A DNA stretch of 64,000 nucleotides from Oculina patagonica (taxonomy: Eukaryota): positions 12,152,001 through 12,216,000 of the forward strand of contig NC_135761.1 of NCBI RefSeq assembly GCF_052425735.1. Direction: 5' to 3'. Below are positions 16,666 through 32,899 of this stretch, in pieces. The position numbers and the translations under genes are program-made. The notes beneath the pieces were generated by a model. The model was not told where the DNA came from and did no database searches. It was given only the letters and a program-made list of their open reading frames with translations. Position 1 is the first letter of the stretch; every line of letters starts with the position of its first letter.

Positions 16666-17220
16666 TCATTCTTTTCCCTTAAAACGAGCCGGTAACTGCG
16701 CCATTTTCTCCACCAGTAATGCGATCATATCTTCGTCGCGTTTCTCTATCGCGATATGAAAAGGAATATACTTCTCGATCGTTTCAGCGTATAAGTCAGC
16801 TCCGTTGCAAATCAACAGGCGAGCGAGTTCCACATGACCGCCAAGAACAGCCGCGTGAAGAGCAGTCCAATCTTCGCTATCCACAGTGTTAATTTTCGCG
16901 CCACAATCTAACAGTGCCTTTACACATTCCAGCCTCCCTTCGAACGCTGCTTCGTGAATCAGTGGAACGCCACTTTTGCTCATTTCGTTGACCTTAATTC
17001 CTTCCTCTTTGACAATTCGAGGGATCTCGTCGGGTTTGTTGTTCATTACCGCCTCCCGGAGGTTACTACTGTAGCTCCTACGGCGCTCCGATTTGTACTT
17101 CAATTTAAAACTATTCACGCACAATTTATCCGCAGTTTTCTTGACATCTCCGTTGCCAGAATTTCCTTCATCCTCCCATAAATCGATTTTTATTTTGGGT
17201 GTTTGCCGCTTTGTCGCCAT
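16666..17220 (-). CDS. Small ankyrin-repeat protein, PPP1R27-like, no canonical RVxF (184 aa)
   Basis: Single ORF with SGVPLIHEAAFEGRLECVKALL and DWTALHAAVLGGH repeats resembling PPP1R27/MYPT ankyrins; paralogous to 20500-21156. Confidence 0.8.
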   Translation of the reverse strand: MATKRQTPKIKIDLWEDEGNSGNGDVKKTADKLCVNSFKLKYKSERRRSYSSNLREAVMNNKPDEIPRIVKEEGIKVNEMSKSGVPLIHEAAFEGRLECVKALLDCGAKINTVDSEDWTALHAAVLGGHVELARLLICNGADLYAETIEKYIPFHIAIEKRDEDMIALLVEKMAQLPARFKGKE

Positions 17221-20499: not shown

Positions 20500-21156
20500 A
20501 TGCTTTTGGCTCACAGTATGATGGCTGAGCGCAACAAAAGACGAGCCCTTCTTTCCGAGACTGATGCAGCTAATTTAGCATCTGGAACTTTCTTGTATCC
20601 GAAAACTGTTTTACCGAGAGCGGCTTCGACACCGGAAATACCACTGGAAATCCGTAGCTCGTCTAAAGATTATTCCGTAGAGGAAAACAACGTATGTAAA
20701 AGGAAATACAGTCGTCCTCGGAGTGTCAGCTTCCACCCAGACATACGGCTATATTACGCCGCCACAACCAACGATTTAGAGGAGGTTAAGATGTTGGTAG
20801 AGTCGGGAATGGCTGACGTGAACGCCACCAACCCGGCCGAGGGCGCTACCGCGTTACACGGTGCCGCCTACGAAGGACACGTTGATTGTCTTCGGTATCT
20901 TCTTGAAAACGGCGCAGACGTGAACATTCATGACGATGATGGCTGGACGTCGCTACACGCCGCCGTGATTGGGAAGAAAAGGAAATGTGTTGAACTTTTA
21001 TTGAAAGCAAACTGTGACCCTTTTGCCGAGACCATCGATGGCTTGACGCCATTTCAAATGGCCATAGAAATAGGGAATGATAAAATTCTAAGACAGTTCG
21101 TAAAGAGGTTTAGTTCGATGATGGATGACGACTCTGTCCCAGAGACATCAGTATGA
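20500..21156 (+). CDS. Ankyrin-repeat PP1 regulatory subunit, PPP1R27-like (218 aa)
   Basis: RSVSFHPD (RVxF) directly before ankyrin repeats (GATALHGAAYEGHVDCLRYLL, GWTSLHAAV); ends ETSV. Confidence 0.85.
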   Translation: MLLAHSMMAERNKRRALLSETDAANLASGTFLYPKTVLPRAASTPEIPLEIRSSSKDYSVEENNVCKRKYSRPRSVSFHPDIRLYYAATTNDLEEVKMLVESGMADVNATNPAEGATALHGAAYEGHVDCLRYLLENGADVNIHDDDGWTSLHAAVIGKKRKCVELLLKANCDPFAETIDGLTPFQMAIEIGNDKILRQFVKRFSSMMDDDSVPETSV

Positions 21157-25410: not shown

Positions 25411-26328
25411 ATGGTGGAAAACGACGAAAAGCCATGGCCCGAGCCAGCTCCAGACTGGCCAGAAGCGAAAGAAGTTTGGAAATGGGGTTGGCCGTTTCAC
25501 GTTTATTTCTTTGCAGTGTTGTATTGCTTTGTCGTCATTCGAGGCCTTTACGTCTTGATCAGGCACGGGAAAGTGCATTCTTGGAGGAAGAACCATCGCT
25601 TCTTACTGAACTTGCTTCTTTTGGCGTTTGGCACAACTCGGGCGCTATTTCTGATTTGGGATCCGTATGGCTCGAACCCAAACCATACCAAAACAGAGCT
25701 CATCATTTGTATCATAACTTTTGGCGTCGGAACAGCGTGCATAACTTCAGCGTTCAGTTTTTTATTGCTAATCGTGCTCGAGAGCACCCGCATCTCGCTT
25801 GCGCCGAGCAAGTTTCAAAACCGAACGTTCCTGCTCGGAGTTTTGACAGTCAACGTGGGTTACGTGGTAATATCCGACTTAATTGTTGCTCATTTTCATG
25901 AAGCTATGGTAATGATCTTAATTTGCCAAATAACGTTCGCTCTCTGGGGATTTCTCATCGCACTGGGTTATGCATTCGCTGCGGTGCGACTATGGCGCAA
26001 CCTGACGGCCTCGCGCCAGACCGCTCAGTACGACCCGGGTCTCGCTGCTGAAGGCAAAAAGATAACACGGCTGGTCAGCTTGCTGTATTCGGCGGCGATC
26101 TGTGGAGTGGTTCTGTTTTCCACAATTGTTTACACGGCTCTTGGCGAGACAGGAGTGTACAATGAGTCAGGTGAAGTGAGTAATTGGCCGTGGTTTGCGG
26201 TGCAGACATTGCTAAGGACGTGTGAGGTGTTCATGTGCTTGGTTATATTTTTGATTGCGCTGAAGACAAGCACTGCCAACTCTACGAACAACAATCGAGT
26301 CGACAGTGTCTCGAAAGTAACGACCTAA
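25411..26328 (+). CDS. PRRT3/PRRT4-like multi-pass (about 7 TM) membrane protein, 305 aa, intronless CDS
   Basis: PEPAPDW..W.W.FHVYFFAVLY, RALFLIWDPYGS and WPWFAVQTLLRTCE motifs; ~7 hydrophobic segments. Confidence 0.8.
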   Translation: MVENDEKPWPEPAPDWPEAKEVWKWGWPFHVYFFAVLYCFVVIRGLYVLIRHGKVHSWRKNHRFLLNLLLLAFGTTRALFLIWDPYGSNPNHTKTELIICIITFGVGTACITSAFSFLLLIVLESTRISLAPSKFQNRTFLLGVLTVNVGYVVISDLIVAHFHEAMVMILICQITFALWGFLIALGYAFAAVRLWRNLTASRQTAQYDPGLAAEGKKITRLVSLLYSAAICGVVLFSTIVYTALGETGVYNESGEVSNWPWFAVQTLLRTCEVFMCLVIFLIALKTSTANSTNNNRVDSVSKVTT

Positions 26329-27756
26329 TGTTGCCCGAGTAAATGAACTGCTTGTTCAGCTTTTCGAGCCCGAAGTCCTCAATGAGCCTTCGAGAAAAAC
26401 TAGACTAATCATGTAAACTGCATTAAAAATCCCAGCAACGTGAGAAGCTTCGAGAAAATTAGACTAATAAACTGCATTAAAAAAAAAGGAAGCTTTCAAT
26501 AAAATTTTCGTCACCATGCAAATGTTTTAAATTAACTCAGGCGGGATAAATAAATAACAATTTTCTTTCTTAAATAGACAATATATTGACAAGCTGCTTT
26601 TTCTTTAAAGATTAATATCGAGATAAAAATGTTAATTTTGTCCCCGTTTAATTTGCTCAAACAACTGGTTTTGTAGTTAAAAACCAGTTTTGAATCTAAC
26701 CTTCGAATTAATTGTTATTTATCTCAGTGAAAGCACACATATCTCACAAATTAAAATCAGTTATTTCAAAGTAGATTTATAATTTCGCGTGTCTTAACCA
26801 CGATGCAGCAACTACAATTAAGGTAGGGTCAATATAATAGAGTTGTTCCGCACAAGAACCTTAGAGATGTAAATTTCCATTTCGTAACCTTAGGGCCTGT
26901 TTATATGGAGGAGAGTTGTCCCTGGTAGGAGGGCTACCCTCTCCCCCGAGCTATCTTTTGCCGAGAACGCCGGTTTAATTTGCATGCCTAAGGTTACAAA
27001 GCAGAAATTTGCATCTGTAAGGTTTTTGTGCGGAACAGCTCCAATGAGTCGTAAAAAATGAAAGTTACAATGCTGACAGAGAACTCCGGTCCCTTTTATC
27101 AAATATTTCATTTCTGAAAATAATTGGCCATCAAATATGTTCGCTTTAGGCACTTGGTGACGTTACATATCCCTTGCGTTGTTTTCTTCTACATTTATTC
27201 CAAGACCGCCATTGGATTATTAATCAACAGCTAAATATAACCCAATTTTTTGAAAAAAAAATTGGATCGACTGGACCGAACCAAAGAGAAGGTCCGCAAA
27301 CCTGCCGAAAGGCATCATCCCATGAAATATCACATCAATACGTAATGAACAAGCAAGTTTGATAAAGTTTCTTACAGCTTTGCTCAGCAAAAATAAACAT
27401 CAATCTCGAGAAAAAGATTCTTCAAGCCACTTTTGATATTGTCAAGTAGGACAAATAAAAAAACGGAAAAATTTTTCCTTTTCGTGTCCAATGTTCAGTA
27501 AGAAACAGATGCGCGCGAAAATAATTTATAAGCCGTCTGGATCCGTGGTCAATTTTGCAAAATTCTGACCGCTCAGCGAACCAATCAAAACGTTTATTTT
27601 CATCGTGGGCCAACTTTTAAAGGAACCAATAGGATTTTAATGTCTGTTACGCTACGCAACGAGCGGGTTTGGCTGGGAATGCAAAGGGGCGAGGCATCAG
27701 CGATCTAGCCCCCGAAGTGAAGGCGGGGACCCGACTGAGAGGTAGGTGCTTGGACG

Positions 27757-27770
27757 GTTGCTATGGAAAC
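27757..27770. promoter_or_regulatory. RFX X-box motif
   Basis: GTTGCTATGGAAAC inside a GC-rich island. Confidence 0.4.
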
Positions 27771-30190
27771 CAACTCCACAGCGAGACCCTTTGCACGAGT
27801 CACACTGGCCAAAGCCAGTGGAGAAAAGGAAAGAAAAAGGGGGTATATAGAGGAGTGTGGGAGACGAAAAACAAACTACTTGCAGCTAGCGAGCAAACTG
27901 CGAATGTACGCGTCAGCATGACGACAGCGCGCGAAAGACGTGGTGCGCGAGGGCGAGGCTGAGCCAAGACGAGCAAGGTTGTCTAGCCCGTCCCAATTTC
28001 TGAGCATGCACAGAATCTGTATTTCCAGCCAATCAGATTTGTCAGAATTGACAATGAGTCCTTGTATCGCGTGACAGATATGACTTTTTGCTGACCTTTT
28101 TAATGGTAAGAAGATCGTTTTTTTCCATACTTCAGCCTGATTTATCCACGGAAATCTTTCGTTTCCATTCTCGTCCCCAGAGCCCTAATTGGTTTTTTTT
28201 TTAGATCATCGTGTCATTGAAACGAGGTGTTCTGGGGACAAGATTAATAAACGAAGTGACAAAAATTATTCGAACTCCTTGGTGATGGCCAGCTGCCATT
28301 TTGAATAAAAAGGACGCAGATTATATGCAAATATTATTGTGCACTTTTTATCGTCAATGGTTGTGTTTCCATCTCAGTTCGTATAAAAGACAACAATCGC
28401 GACAAAAAAGTTTTCGTTTTACTAACAGTTTATCTTCCGTCGTGAATTACAACAGGAAAAACATGAAAAATTACCAAAAACATTTTTTAAGCTGCTATCT
28501 TAATCAACAAAACAAGAATCATTGAAATTATATTGTACGTGTTTATTTCTTTTTTAATGGCTCGGTTGCTATCTTAAATTAAACGAACAGGAATCATGAA
28601 AAAGATTTTTTTCTTGTTAATAGTCCAGCTGCCATCTTGAATGAAAAGAACAAAAATCGTGGAAACGGTCTATAAAATCTTCTAGGCTCAACTAGTAAAA
28701 ATTGAACAGAATTCTTTTTTCGCTAGCTAACATTGTCCTGAAGATCAGAGATTTTAGGAATTGCAGAGACACTTTAATCGTTTTTCTTTTCGCCTGTTTT
28801 AGAGCTTCGAACATTTAAGATCTGTGAAACGTTCGGTTCCTTTCTGGAAAAGCGAATTCCAAGCTTTACGTTTCCTTAAACTGCTTAAAGTTTAAGGAAT
28901 GGACGCGCTAAGCCACCGCCAAAAAAAACGATGTCGATTTTTTAATATTGCCACCAACCGAACAGCAGACAAATGAGATCTTAAAACGATTTAGTTTGTT
29001 TAATACTAAACGCTACTGTTGGTCCTTGTAATGTTGAGTGTGTTTACGATAATATTGAGCTGTCTGAGGGAACACAATACTTCATCTGCGTCAACAACTC
29101 TGAGAGGCAGTGTCGGCCTTTCAAATCACACAGACGGAATCAATTTCTCTCACTTTGTACGATGCTTTATTTGTCTCAGTTGTCAAGCACTGAATAATGA
29201 CGATTTTCAATTAATCATCCGCAAAGGAAAACAATATACCAAACCACAGAGCATGTGAGCAACAAAGAAAAGTGATCGACGCTGCAATATTCTGCCTCTT
29301 GTTTAAGACAGCATCGTTTGAAATTAGGGATTAAGCGAATAATAAGCCAGGGCTGGACCGCGCTGTTTTTGAAAAGAACGTTTAGAAAATTGACTATTTT
29401 AAAACAGCTTACTTAGGAGGAATTTATTACTTGTACTGAATAAAGGAATAGCAGATTAAGTGTCGGATAATTACTACTCTTAAAATTACTATAATTGGAC
29501 GCGGAGCAAGGGTAGTGAGAGCTTTCATTAACGCGATTGATGGGTGTTCGGCCTTTCATATTGAAATTTGTCCTAAAATAATATTTGCCAATGCAAACAA
29601 ATTTACAATTGAGCGGAATTAATATACCAGGCGTTCGCTTTTGAAGTTTTGTGAATTTTAATTACGGTTTTCATGTTGATGACTTCTGCGTCACGAGTAA
29701 TACGGAAAATTTTCTGATTTAACAAGAAATCGATTGCGGGTACAAAGCTGAATTCAGGTGAAAAGTATCTGATGCTTCCAAGAATCGCTTCTGCTGAAAT
29801 CTGCGTCAAGAAAACGAGAAACAGCGCTTGCAACGGGTTCAAAACATCCGGTTTGAAAACATTTTGTTGAAAAAAAAAAACGGGTGCTGTTTTCTTCGCG
29901 ATTAAAGTGTACTTACATACGGCGTAAAGTACACTCGAGCCCGTTAAACAAGTTGTCAAGACTCCGTTCGCTGATATAACCAGGCAAGAAAAACTGGCCT
30001 TTCCAGTTTCTAAGACAACGAAAATAGCATCCGATATGATGCTATAATATGGAAGCCAGTGCAAATCTCGACACACGGAAAACGACATTTCCAAAGTACT
30101 GAAACCCAGCACCGAGGCGACAAACGCAACTGTGAAAACTCGAAACATTCATGTAAAAATCTTACAACTGTGGATTAATTCCTTGGTGAA

Positions 30191-30388
30191 ATGGAAGCGT
30201 CTGCCGCAGAAGAAAGTACAGACAGCGCAAAAGCGTTTAAAAGTTGTGGGAGGACAGGCCGGCGCGGAGCCTGCATTGACACGGATATTACGCGTGATAA
30301 GCTACAAGATATTATTCACAAGGTTGAAAAAGTCTGTTTGGATGAAACAGAAAACTCACAATCGAATCAAGGCGAAAAGGGGACGTAG
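30191..30388 (+). CDS. cAMP-dependent protein kinase inhibitor (PKI family), 65 aa
   Basis: F-K-S-C-G-R-T-G-R-R-G-A aligns with PKI F-x-x-S-G-R-T-G-R-R-N-A; downstream NES-like IIHKVEKVCL; polar tail; gaaATGg start. Confidence 0.85.
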   Translation: MEASAAEESTDSAKAFKSCGRTGRRGACIDTDITRDKLQDIIHKVEKVCLDETENSQSNQGEKGT

Positions 30389-31784
30389 CACAAACATTAA
30401 AGGATTTATACTCGTATTTATCGTTTTTTAGACCAAGCGCTTGGAAACTGGAAAGACACTGCGCTGAAATCCCGCCTTCTAAACCTGGCGCGCGGAGTTT
30501 TGCGTCACTTGAAGTTTTAATACTAGTACGTCGATATTGTAATTGGATGTTTGTCTGATCATGAAAATGCTTTTTTTTTGCTTCATGGATAACAGCATTC
30601 CGGTAAAAAAAAAATATCAACGTATGAAACATCTGACATGAAGTGGCAGGTTCTTTGACAGTTTCATCGCATAATGCTGTTAGTAAACAAACCTCGATTC
30701 TTGTTTGCATTAAAACTTGGCGATTATATTATTCGACTTTCAAGAAATGATATTGAACGTCGGAGAGAAGGCGATTTAGTGTCTTCTTTGGTAATTGTAT
30801 ATTTACATTTTTTTACAAAAGGATGCATTCAACTTAAAAAAAAATTGAGAAAAAAAGATCTTTTTTTGGTTAGTAGTTGTTGTTTTTAATACGTCTTATA
30901 TTTGCCAAAGCGCTCGCTTTCCTGTTGATTTCCAATTTCACGGTCGATGCGATTCGTGAGTTTGAATAAATATTTACTTTTTCGTTTTAGAAAGCTTGTG
31001 ATATTATAACAAACATGGTCACGCTGAATGCAAAGCGAGAACAATGTTTATCTTTTAATTTTTTCTAAAAATAATGTCGAGAGCAGCAGGTGGACAGAGG
31101 GGATTGTGAATTTTACAGTTGAATTGCGTCAAGTTATTTATATTATACTTTACGCGAATTTCACTGATTTGTTAAAACTCAAGTGCTGCAATATTTCAAA
31201 ATATCGCAATTTTTTCAACAATTTTTAAACTAAGTATTTGTGGATGCAAAAATTTCGTTTTGCTTTTGAATAAAAATGTGCAACGCGTTCTGGCGAACTC
31301 TTTTTTTTTTTTTCAATCAATCAAGAGCCAAACTTATTTGGCCAAGTGATTAAACCAATCAGGTGCCAAACTTATTCGGCCACGTGATTTGGCGAAACGC
31401 AAATTTACCCGCGCTTGGCACGGGTACTTTATTTACTAACAGTGGACTGGATTGATGGATAGGTGGATCGGTGGGAAAATCGATCAAGGTGACATGACTG
31501 CGTGTGTACTTGTCCAGTGTAGACAATTTTAGAATTCAATGTTTTTAAGTGTTTTTATTCATAGCAAAATACAAGTGTTGCCAGCAACTTTTTCGGCATT
31601 TGTTCGTCTACTGAAAATAAAATACTTAGAAACCCAACGCTGTACAGAACACGAGAAAAAAGTTTGAACATTTATCCAAATTTACATGTTAGCGATTGAC
31701 AATCTTGAACAATAAGATCCTTAACCAACCATGATTTGGCCCAAGAAACTTTCCCTCCATTGACACTGGTTAGATGTTTTTTGT

Positions 31785-32238
31785 TAGCCTGTTCCAGGCT
31801 TTTGGTTAGTTGGGGAGTAGTGCGATAGAGCAGTTTTCACTTGAGTGTCGAAAGTAAATTGCGTTTGCTTTGGTTTTGCATTACTACGCTTAGTGATTGG
31901 CTTAAAAATCTCGCGCCACTTTCTCAGCCAATCAGAACTAAAACCAAAACCAATCGTGACTCGCTCGCGCACGTTTTCCCGCGCTTCGTGCCAGCTACAT
32001 GTATTTGCTTCGAGTTTTGATTGGTTCACTGGATTGTCTGTGTCCTTTGTGATTGGCCAGAGTAATTACTTTGGTTTTGGTTTTACGACACTCAATTGAA
32101 AACTGCTCTAACTGGGGGAGGGTGGAGTGGGAGGGGAAAGGGAGAGGAAAGTGGTGTGGAGAAGTCCCTCGCAATTTTTTCCACTCGCCGTTTTTCGCGC
32201 TGCCGGTTTTCAACTAACTGAACGCCTGGAGCAGGCTA
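31785..32238. mobile_element. TIR element hosting a nested MITE
   Basis: TAGCCTGTTCCAGGC...GCCTGGAGCAGGCTA. Confidence 0.7.
31828..32108. mobile_element. TA-flanked MITE, copy 1
   Basis: TA-GAGCAGTTTTCA...TGAAAACTGCTC-TA; near-identical to 48488-48792. Confidence 0.9.
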
Positions 32239-32899
32239 TTTTTTTTTTTTTGCTTCGAGTTATTTGCCGCGGTAGTGATTCGGCAGATGTTGTGACGACT
32301 TGGTTTTCGTTTCTCGAAAGTCATTGTAAAGGTAACCCGTTTATGGTTATAATAAAGAGCGTAATACAATTGGATCTCATTCTGTGTGAACAGTTTCAAG
32401 ATAAATACGGTGCGACTGGAATACAGTAAAAACCTGGGAGTAAGAACCCTATTTTTTCAAATTAGCCTACACAGGTTCTTACATAAATCGTAGTCATATT
32501 CGGCTAAATTCTTGTAATAATTTGAATACCACATAAGTGTTTATGTAAAAATGAAGCATTGATCATTCAGACATAACATTATATACATGTAGTAGTACAG
32601 TAATGCCTGGTAAAACATTTTTTCCTAAAAGTTAACATTTTTAATCAATTTTAGAAACGAAAATATTAGGCTAAATAGGTTCTTATAAAAAGGGGGTCTA
32701 ATTTGCAAATTTTAGTCCAACAGGTTTGTAAATGGTTCTTACTCGCGGGTTTTTACTTTGCAACTACAAGACCACAGGAAAGCGGAAACAATTTGATGAC
32801 ACTTGCAGAACAATCACGAATCACAGCAACGATTAAAATCCGCTCTGAAGTCATATTAGATATGTCCGCCTCGCACCGTATTCTACATTTTCGTGCTTA

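Follow-up and report, generated by a model that had tools for sequence, protein, structure and literature searches.

A short single-exon gene and its surroundings

The window is a 64,000-nucleotide stretch of the Oculina patagonica genome, and the gene under study is an open reading frame (ORF) of 65 codons near its middle (Table 1). A preliminary description of this DNA had read the ORF as a small PKI with Phe at P-11, Arg at P-6, P-3 and P-2, Ala at P0 and Cys at P+1. Translation bears out the ORF and its length, and places all of these residues where they had been assigned: F16 is P-11, R21 is P-6, R24 and R25 are P-3 and P-2, G26 is P-1, A27 is P0 and C28 is P+1. The protein contains three cysteines, C19, C28 and C49. 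An in-frame TAA stop lies five codons 5' of the start codon at 30191, and the start context, with a purine at -3 and G at +4, recurs in each of the related loci checked (8/8).

Table 1. Features of the PKI-like gene (window positions) and related genes elsewhere in the same genome
Feature	Position	Strand	Basis or remark
PKI-like coding sequence, 65 residues plus TAG stop	30191..30388	+	single uninterrupted ORF; translation, homologues, dN/dS
Pseudosubstrate core F16-I29 (AFKSCGRTGRRGACI)	30236..30277	+	invariant residues in 20 sequences; aligns to canonical coral PKI core
C19 (P-8) codon	30245-30247	+	
A27 (P0) codon	30269-30271	+	
C28 (P+1) codon	30272-30274	+	
Predicted amphipathic helix 35-50 with NES-like L38, I41, V45, V48, L50	30293..30340	+	AlphaFold2 and class-1a pattern
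Approximate unspliced transcript; 5' leader ~446 nt, 3' trailer ~550 nt	29745..30945	+	RNA-like contigs; ends not mapped
Upstream ORF, 17 codons, in putative leader; starts MEASAN	30049..30102	+	conserved in four loci
Conserved non-coding block	29480..29665	.	cross-locus identity; candidate promoter/enhancer
Canonical PKI (RRNAL), 71 aa	C9:19765940-19766131 (L019:1495-1707)		50-51 bits PF02827, uninterrupted ORF
Second Cys-type PKI-like gene, 76 aa	C12:778848-778940 (L021:1423-1650)		genome profile searches
PKA-C gene, multi-exon, at least nine short exons	C14:8138324-8144735 (L107)		own genome

The preliminary description had staked its reading on a transcript, and RNA-like contigs from four runs (three coded organisms, four studies; the runs are guessed to be RNA) do span the gene when aligned over 26800-32700. 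In each run, contigs are colinear with the gene (29745-30559, 29744-30611, 29649-30941 and 29988-30804), with no joints within it. Contig depth in run X1 is 83 over the gene and about 4 in the flanks, and depth is zero in the nearby unique stretches 27194-27587 and 28573-29163. The pattern is that of RNA, not of DNA. These observations support an unspliced transcript of about 1.2 kb over the ORF, its strand and ends not being readable from the contigs. Four other contigs (L108-L111), considered as 1.27-kb transcripts, were set aside because they end in simple repeats and are thus probably genomic.

Two elements lie upstream of the coding sequence. The first is a 17-codon upstream ORF, the opening residues of which resemble those of the main ORF, MEASAA. 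Its place and length are kept in four scleractinian loci (L001, L005, L007 and L010), and it is absent from the two most distant ones (L004 and L009). It could be a translational control element, or else a remnant left when the start region was partly duplicated. The second is a conserved non-coding block some 80-260 bp upstream of the starts of the RNA-like contigs, which retains 64-76% identity to the most distant scleractinian loci, as compared with 17-55% for neighbouring DNA. Across seven coral loci it carries three near-invariant runs, GCAAACAAA (forkhead-like), GGAATTAAT (homeobox-like) and TTTCATATTGAAAT, and from this conservation we regard it as a candidate promoter or enhancer of the PKI-like gene. 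An Rfam search of 28500-32500 returned nothing credible, and the block matches no family there. A CRE-like half-site, CGTCA, at about 29688 is conserved in part alone and is not claimed as an element.

As to the neighbouring DNA, two single-ORF ankyrin-repeat proteins are encoded 9-13 kb upstream of the PKI-like gene, at 16666-17220 on the reverse strand and 20500-21156 on the forward strand (Ank_2, E 1e-31 and 1e-22, respectively), and a 305-aa ORF at 25411-26328 (+) has no Pfam match. Downstream, a high-copy repeat of about 285 bp at 31825-32110 reaches a summed contig depth of 5e4 to 5e5 in all four runs. Loose contig ends number in the hundreds at 31825/6 and 32110/1, joints inside the repeat are numerous, and it resembles a family of short interspersed or miniature transposable elements. 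Two antisense ORFs near the gene, 29603-30148(-) and 30312-30710(-), were rejected as genes on the grounds that neither has a Pfam match and their DNA is poorly conserved.

Conservation of the ORF

Homologues were sought in two ways. A word-indexed search of 5.8 billion proteins returned 14 close homologues, with 60-97% identity and lengths of 65-78 aa. A further nine, more distant members (29-63% identity, 60-114 aa as called) came from a full HMMER scan in which the family profile was run against 1.84 billion representatives. The latter scan recovered Cys-type relatives alone, with no vertebrate PKI at E <= 0.001; one entry from it, P0055, is a repeat protein and was discarded as a spurious match. 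None of the sources covered by the protein database searches gives a name to the 65-aa protein or to its relatives. In the 529-Mb genome from which the window comes, the ORF is the sole strong match to its own family profile.

Conservation of the ORF, on which the preliminary description had likewise relied, is evident at both the protein and the DNA level. The length of about 65 aa is kept (about 60-67 aa over the close and distant relatives), and pairwise comparisons that include seven genomic loci from other assemblies give dN/dS values of 0.03-0.22, synonymous sites being close to saturated. The ORF still shares 62-74% of its nucleotides with the two most distant scleractinian loci, while most flanking bins share 31-55%. 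The closest public copy differs by one substitution and an additional Gly (98% identity) and stands at a synonymous distance (dS) of 0.19; it occurs in an NCBI assembly and in run SRR28110921, identified in a publication as Oculina patagonica DNA (PMC12856378).

We conclude that 30191-30388 is a real gene, contained in a single exon and held under purifying selection. A chance ORF or a decaying pseudogene without function might be suspected from the very short length, the want of a name in every source and a Pfam score below the cut-off (see below). Such an origin is extremely improbable in view of the length kept in all relatives, the low dN/dS, the invariant core, the strong start context and the RNA-like contigs that span the gene.

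A diverged member of the PKI family

PKI typically has Asn at P-1 and a bulky hydrophobe at P+1, and the first question is whether a protein that has neither belongs to the family. The Pfam PKI model (PF02827) matches residues 14-60 with an E value of 2.3e-4 and 21.8 bits, which is under the curated cut-off of 25 bits; the Pfam scan of the protein returned no family other than PKI. Among the 20 family members, 13 match PF02827 at E <= 0.01, the best at 7.3e-7. When the family was aligned by hhalign with the canonical coral PKI family, all members of which have PF02827 hits, the probability was 88% and the E value 3.2e-6 over 38 columns. These columns run from the pseudosubstrate through the NES region: the core is matched to the canonical FVRTGRTGRRNAL, and the segment corresponding to helix 35-50 aligns with the canonical coral NES. 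The PKI anchors F16, R21, R24, R25 and A27 are invariant in 20 sequences. By contrast, the family's combination of Asn at P-1 with a bulky aliphatic residue at P+1 (RRNA-I/V/L) is not found, G26 and C28 being invariant in their place. A search of the PDB with the single protein found nothing, and one with the family profile found PKI peptides of 20-22 residues at E 0.7-1.4 only, values that are non-significant because such chains are too short.

Taken together, these data support the view that the 65-aa protein is a diverged PKI paralogue. The designation as a PKI therefore stands in this qualified form, backed by the Pfam match, the hhalign result, a predicted layout of disorder with two helices and a PKI-pose model (both described below), and with the reservation that the Pfam score falls short of the cut-off.

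Searches of the whole genome with PF02827 and with the family profiles place the gene among relatives. The canonical PKI gene, which scores 50.2 bits in the genome search, reads FVRTGRTGRRNALPD followed by the NES LPEVLENFSI. The second Cys-type gene reads EFQKCSRKGRRDACPDIHC (also written EFQKCSRKGRRDAC), after which comes a tail rich in Cys and His, PDIHCxCGDS...C..FH, that is invariant. Ten other assemblies conserve this gene, which shows neither an NES pattern nor an NES-like helix. Judged from this tail, the second Cys-type protein may bind metal. It differs from the 65-aa protein in having Asp at P-1 and in this tail, which replaces the NES-like helix. The two Cys-type families are nevertheless close: hhalign gives a probability of 95.8% and an E value of 6.9e-9, and the pattern F-x2-C-x-R-x-G-R-R-x-A-C is invariant in both. 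Back-translated, C-x-R-x-G-R-R-x-A-C has two hits in the 529-Mb genome, namely the two Cys-type genes, as against 0 and 1 hits for reversed-pattern controls. Each of the three genes has an orthologue set of its own (alignment A4 for the canonical gene and A3 for the second Cys-type gene). The profile and pattern searches thus indicate a set of three in the coral, the canonical PKI plus two paralogues of the Cys type.

Compared with PKI-alpha, -beta and -gamma, the coral protein shares a length of about 65-75 residues, a mostly disordered chain, a short N-terminal helix with Phe at P-11, Arg at P-6, Arg-Arg at P-3/P-2, Ala at P0 and a following helical, leucine-rich, NES-like segment. It departs from them in having Gly for Asn at P-1 and Cys for Ile/Val/Leu at P+1, and it lies below the Pfam gathering threshold alongside a canonical PKI in one genome. 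Homology searches have already revealed PKI homologues in invertebrates (PMC4674680); our literature search yielded no publication that treats cnidarian PKI or a PKI of the Cys type.

The other relevant comparison is with the PKA regulatory subunits. RRGA (RRGAI) is the inhibitor site of RI-alpha, with Ala at P0. The description of the coral motif as an RI-type RRGA is literally true, and the Gly at P-1 is invariant in the family. As in the RI inhibitor site, where Ala occupies the acceptor position (PMC12029036), the coral pseudosubstrate cannot be phosphorylated at P0 as judged by its Ala. Unlike in RI-alpha, where P+1 is Ile, P+1 of the coral protein is Cys. In the Pfam scan the RI domains (dimerisation/docking and two cyclic-nucleotide-binding) are absent from the 65-aa protein and, in the absence of the latter, release of the kinase could not be driven by cAMP in the way it is for RI-alpha.

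Two fixed cysteines

Nine residues, F16, C19, R21, G23, R24, R25, G26, A27 and C28, do not vary among the 20 aligned members, even down to 29% identity. Conservation of the P+1 Cys had been a further stake of the preliminary description; C28 is unchanged in 20/20 members, and its equivalent is invariant in 11 members of the second Cys-type family, in which the C19 equivalent is likewise kept. The three cysteines counted earlier are all present, but the third, C49, is not conserved: it is confined to the nearest relatives, with Ser or Ala elsewhere. The invariance of C19, at P-8, had escaped the first reading.

At P+1, canonical coral PKIs all have Leu (with Asn at P-1) in their own family alignment, and PKI-alpha has Ile22 (PMC6514771). 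No interchange among Ile, Val, Leu, Met and Cys, such as a mere need for a small hydrophobe would lead one to expect, is seen at this position in the Cys-type families over the divergence covered, which argues that Cys itself is selected there and not merely tolerated. P-8 has a vertebrate counterpart: C19 matches the 'unique' Cys13 in the inhibition domain of PKI-gamma, which is thought to raise affinity (PMC7723848). On these alignments, a Cys-type subfamily is defined by constant Cys residues at P-8 and P+1, a constancy that points to a thiol-dependent property.

Structure prediction and the modelled complex

AlphaFold2, run with the family alignment, predicts a chain that is mostly disordered (mean pLDDT 64) apart from two helices, 12-15 and 35-50, the second of which has block pLDDT of 76-82. 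This layout of disorder and two helices, the second with a leucine-rich, NES-like pattern, is similar to that of PKI. The I-x3-V-x2-V-x-L pattern picked out earlier corresponds to I41-x3-V45-x2-V48-x-L50, which fits a class-1a NES and has L38 at the preceding position. A strict class-1a NES is present in 13 of 20 relatives, nine in the register of the window's protein and four one turn earlier, which is the canonical PKI register; the remaining seven have none. On this pattern, helix 35-50 may be a CRM1 export signal.

The coral's own PKA-C keeps Cys199, the reactive residue near the P+1 site to which the preliminary description had drawn attention; its activation-loop exon is identical to that of animal PKA-C, and the P+1 pocket is unchanged. 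The small contig C1281 carries a near-identical PKA-C copy, which resembles an uncollapsed haplotype. Because the coral gene is split into short exons, the complex was modelled with a heterologous partner, a 352-residue PKA-C from a metagenome contig (L033), which matches the coral exons at about 80% identity and the activation-loop exon at 100%. ATP and two Mg were included, the score was taken as the median of three runs, and three controls were modelled alongside.

The complex scored 0.63, and the best of the three controls 0.30. The score mark is reached by 51 of 78 solved complexes and by 2 of 108 mismatched pairs, counts that apply only roughly here since the calibration used microbes and the present models included ligands. 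Between runs, at least 48% of contacts are shared, with partner pLDDT of at least 50. In the model (L033 numbering, which is mouse numbering + 2), F16 lies against kinase residues 236-238 and 241, i.e., the Tyr235/Phe239 pocket; R21 lies against 204-205 and 241-243; R24 against 170, 172 and 203-205; C19 against 241-243; and C28 against 200 (mouse Leu198), the interface including 199-205. These contacts reproduce the PKI pose, which is a likeness and not binding, and the high score may reflect the predictor's memory of solved PKA-PKI structures.

Proposed function

We propose, with good though not full confidence, that the locus is a single-exon coral gene for a small, mostly disordered PKI-family pseudosubstrate inhibitor of free PKA-C, belonging to a Cys-type subfamily with a probable thiol-dependent property. 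By analogy with PKI, the protein would block the active-site cleft of PKA-C. F16 would occupy the Tyr235/Phe239 pocket and the arginines would lie on acidic residues; C28 would enter the P+1 pocket beside Leu198 and Cys199; and Ala at P0 would make the site non-phosphorylatable. Helix 35-50 might, in addition, export the kinase complex via CRM1, which is a less secure part of the proposal. Since Cys would fill the P+1 pocket less well, affinity may be lower.

Is PKA-C the main target? Phe at P-11 and Arg at P-6 are the anchors that make PKI specific for PKA-C. One could argue that the canonical PKI already covers PKA-C, and that the Cys-type protein acts mainly on another basophilic AGC kinase, PRKX-like or cGMP-dependent. 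The genome does contain a PRKX-like gene with an activation loop identical to that of PKA-C and two loops of the PKG type (WTFCGTPEY), and three PKI-like paralogues invite a division of labour. Nevertheless, both PKA-C-specificity anchors are invariant in the family and are docked by the model in the pockets of PKA-C, and we regard another main target as improbable.

What, then, might the thiols do? Under the proposal of a pseudosubstrate inhibitor of PKA-C, the most likely form of the thiol-dependent property would be a reversible disulfide between C28 and Cys199, which would make the inhibitor covalent and lock the kinase in the inhibited state under oxidants until reduction. This refines the proposal above and does not replace it; a redox-sensitive PKI had been put forward as a possibility in the preliminary description. 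There are precedents for such chemistry. Cys199 of PKA-C contacts the P+1 residue of substrates, and a covalent probe/inhibitor based on PKI(14-22) binds it (PMC8146537). Furthermore, H2O2 induces a disulfide between Cys199 and RII Cys97, two residues past the phospho-acceptor, and this bond keeps PKA inactive (PMC12029036). These precedents suggest that a P+1 Cys is well placed for the same reaction. The likeness to RII is that of a Cys just after the inhibitor site and near Cys199; the differences are that the RII Cys is at P+2, that P0 there is a phosphorylatable Ser, that RII is a large cAMP receptor, and that for RII the disulfide is demonstrated. The lock also accords with the invariance of C28 across 20 plus 11 Cys-type members where canonical PKIs have Leu, with Cys199 in the coral kinase, and with the placing of C28 against residue 200 in the model. 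On the other hand, the cytosol is reducing, and the Cys could be conserved for a metal site, lipidation or packing. Weighing these points, we offer the C28-Cys199 lock tentatively, as a possibility that is on the unlikely side.

The pair of cysteines admits a different arrangement, in which C19 and C28 are joined to each other by a disulfide on oxidation, or by a metal. The pseudosubstrate, thereby cyclised, could not stay extended within the cleft, and PKA would be released. The two residues bracket a basic loop, C-G-R-T-G-R-R-G-A-C, and both are invariant at a fixed 8-residue spacing in the two Cys-type families. The Cys/His-rich tail of the second Cys-type paralogue, itself invariant, suggests metal binding. 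In addition, C19 and C28 touch different parts of the kinase in the model and are hence apart when bound, such that an internal link would be incompatible with the bound pose. Against this, PKI-gamma has the P-8 Cys without one at P+1, and there the residue is credited with an increase in affinity (PMC7723848); moreover, apart from C19 and C28, the 65-aa protein offers a metal site no conserved Cys or His. We consider an intramolecular switch of this kind quite unlikely.

Implications

PKI is the textbook example of a pseudosubstrate inhibitor and the source of a peptide in standard laboratory use; to our knowledge, PKI diversity outside vertebrates is almost unexplored. Even if the cysteines of the coral PKI paralogue serve as no thiol switch, the gene is a clean case of a short, conserved gene that is nameless in all sources searched.

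The farther-reaching reading is that cnidarians have a dedicated PKI-like class in which the invariant Cys at P+1 is joined to Cys199 of PKA-C by a reversible disulfide, so that oxidative stress locks PKA off. We hold this to be rather doubtful, a shade more so than the lock itself. If true, the protein would be a natural covalent, redox-gated kinase inhibitor and, as a thiol switch, would give the design of covalent PKA inhibitors directed at Cys199 a template from nature. The coral is a holobiont in which oxidative stress drives bleaching. Oxidative stress from the photosynthetic symbiont or from heat would then covalently lock PKA off until re-reduction and, should the Cys act as such a thiol switch, cAMP signalling in corals would be tied to redox state.
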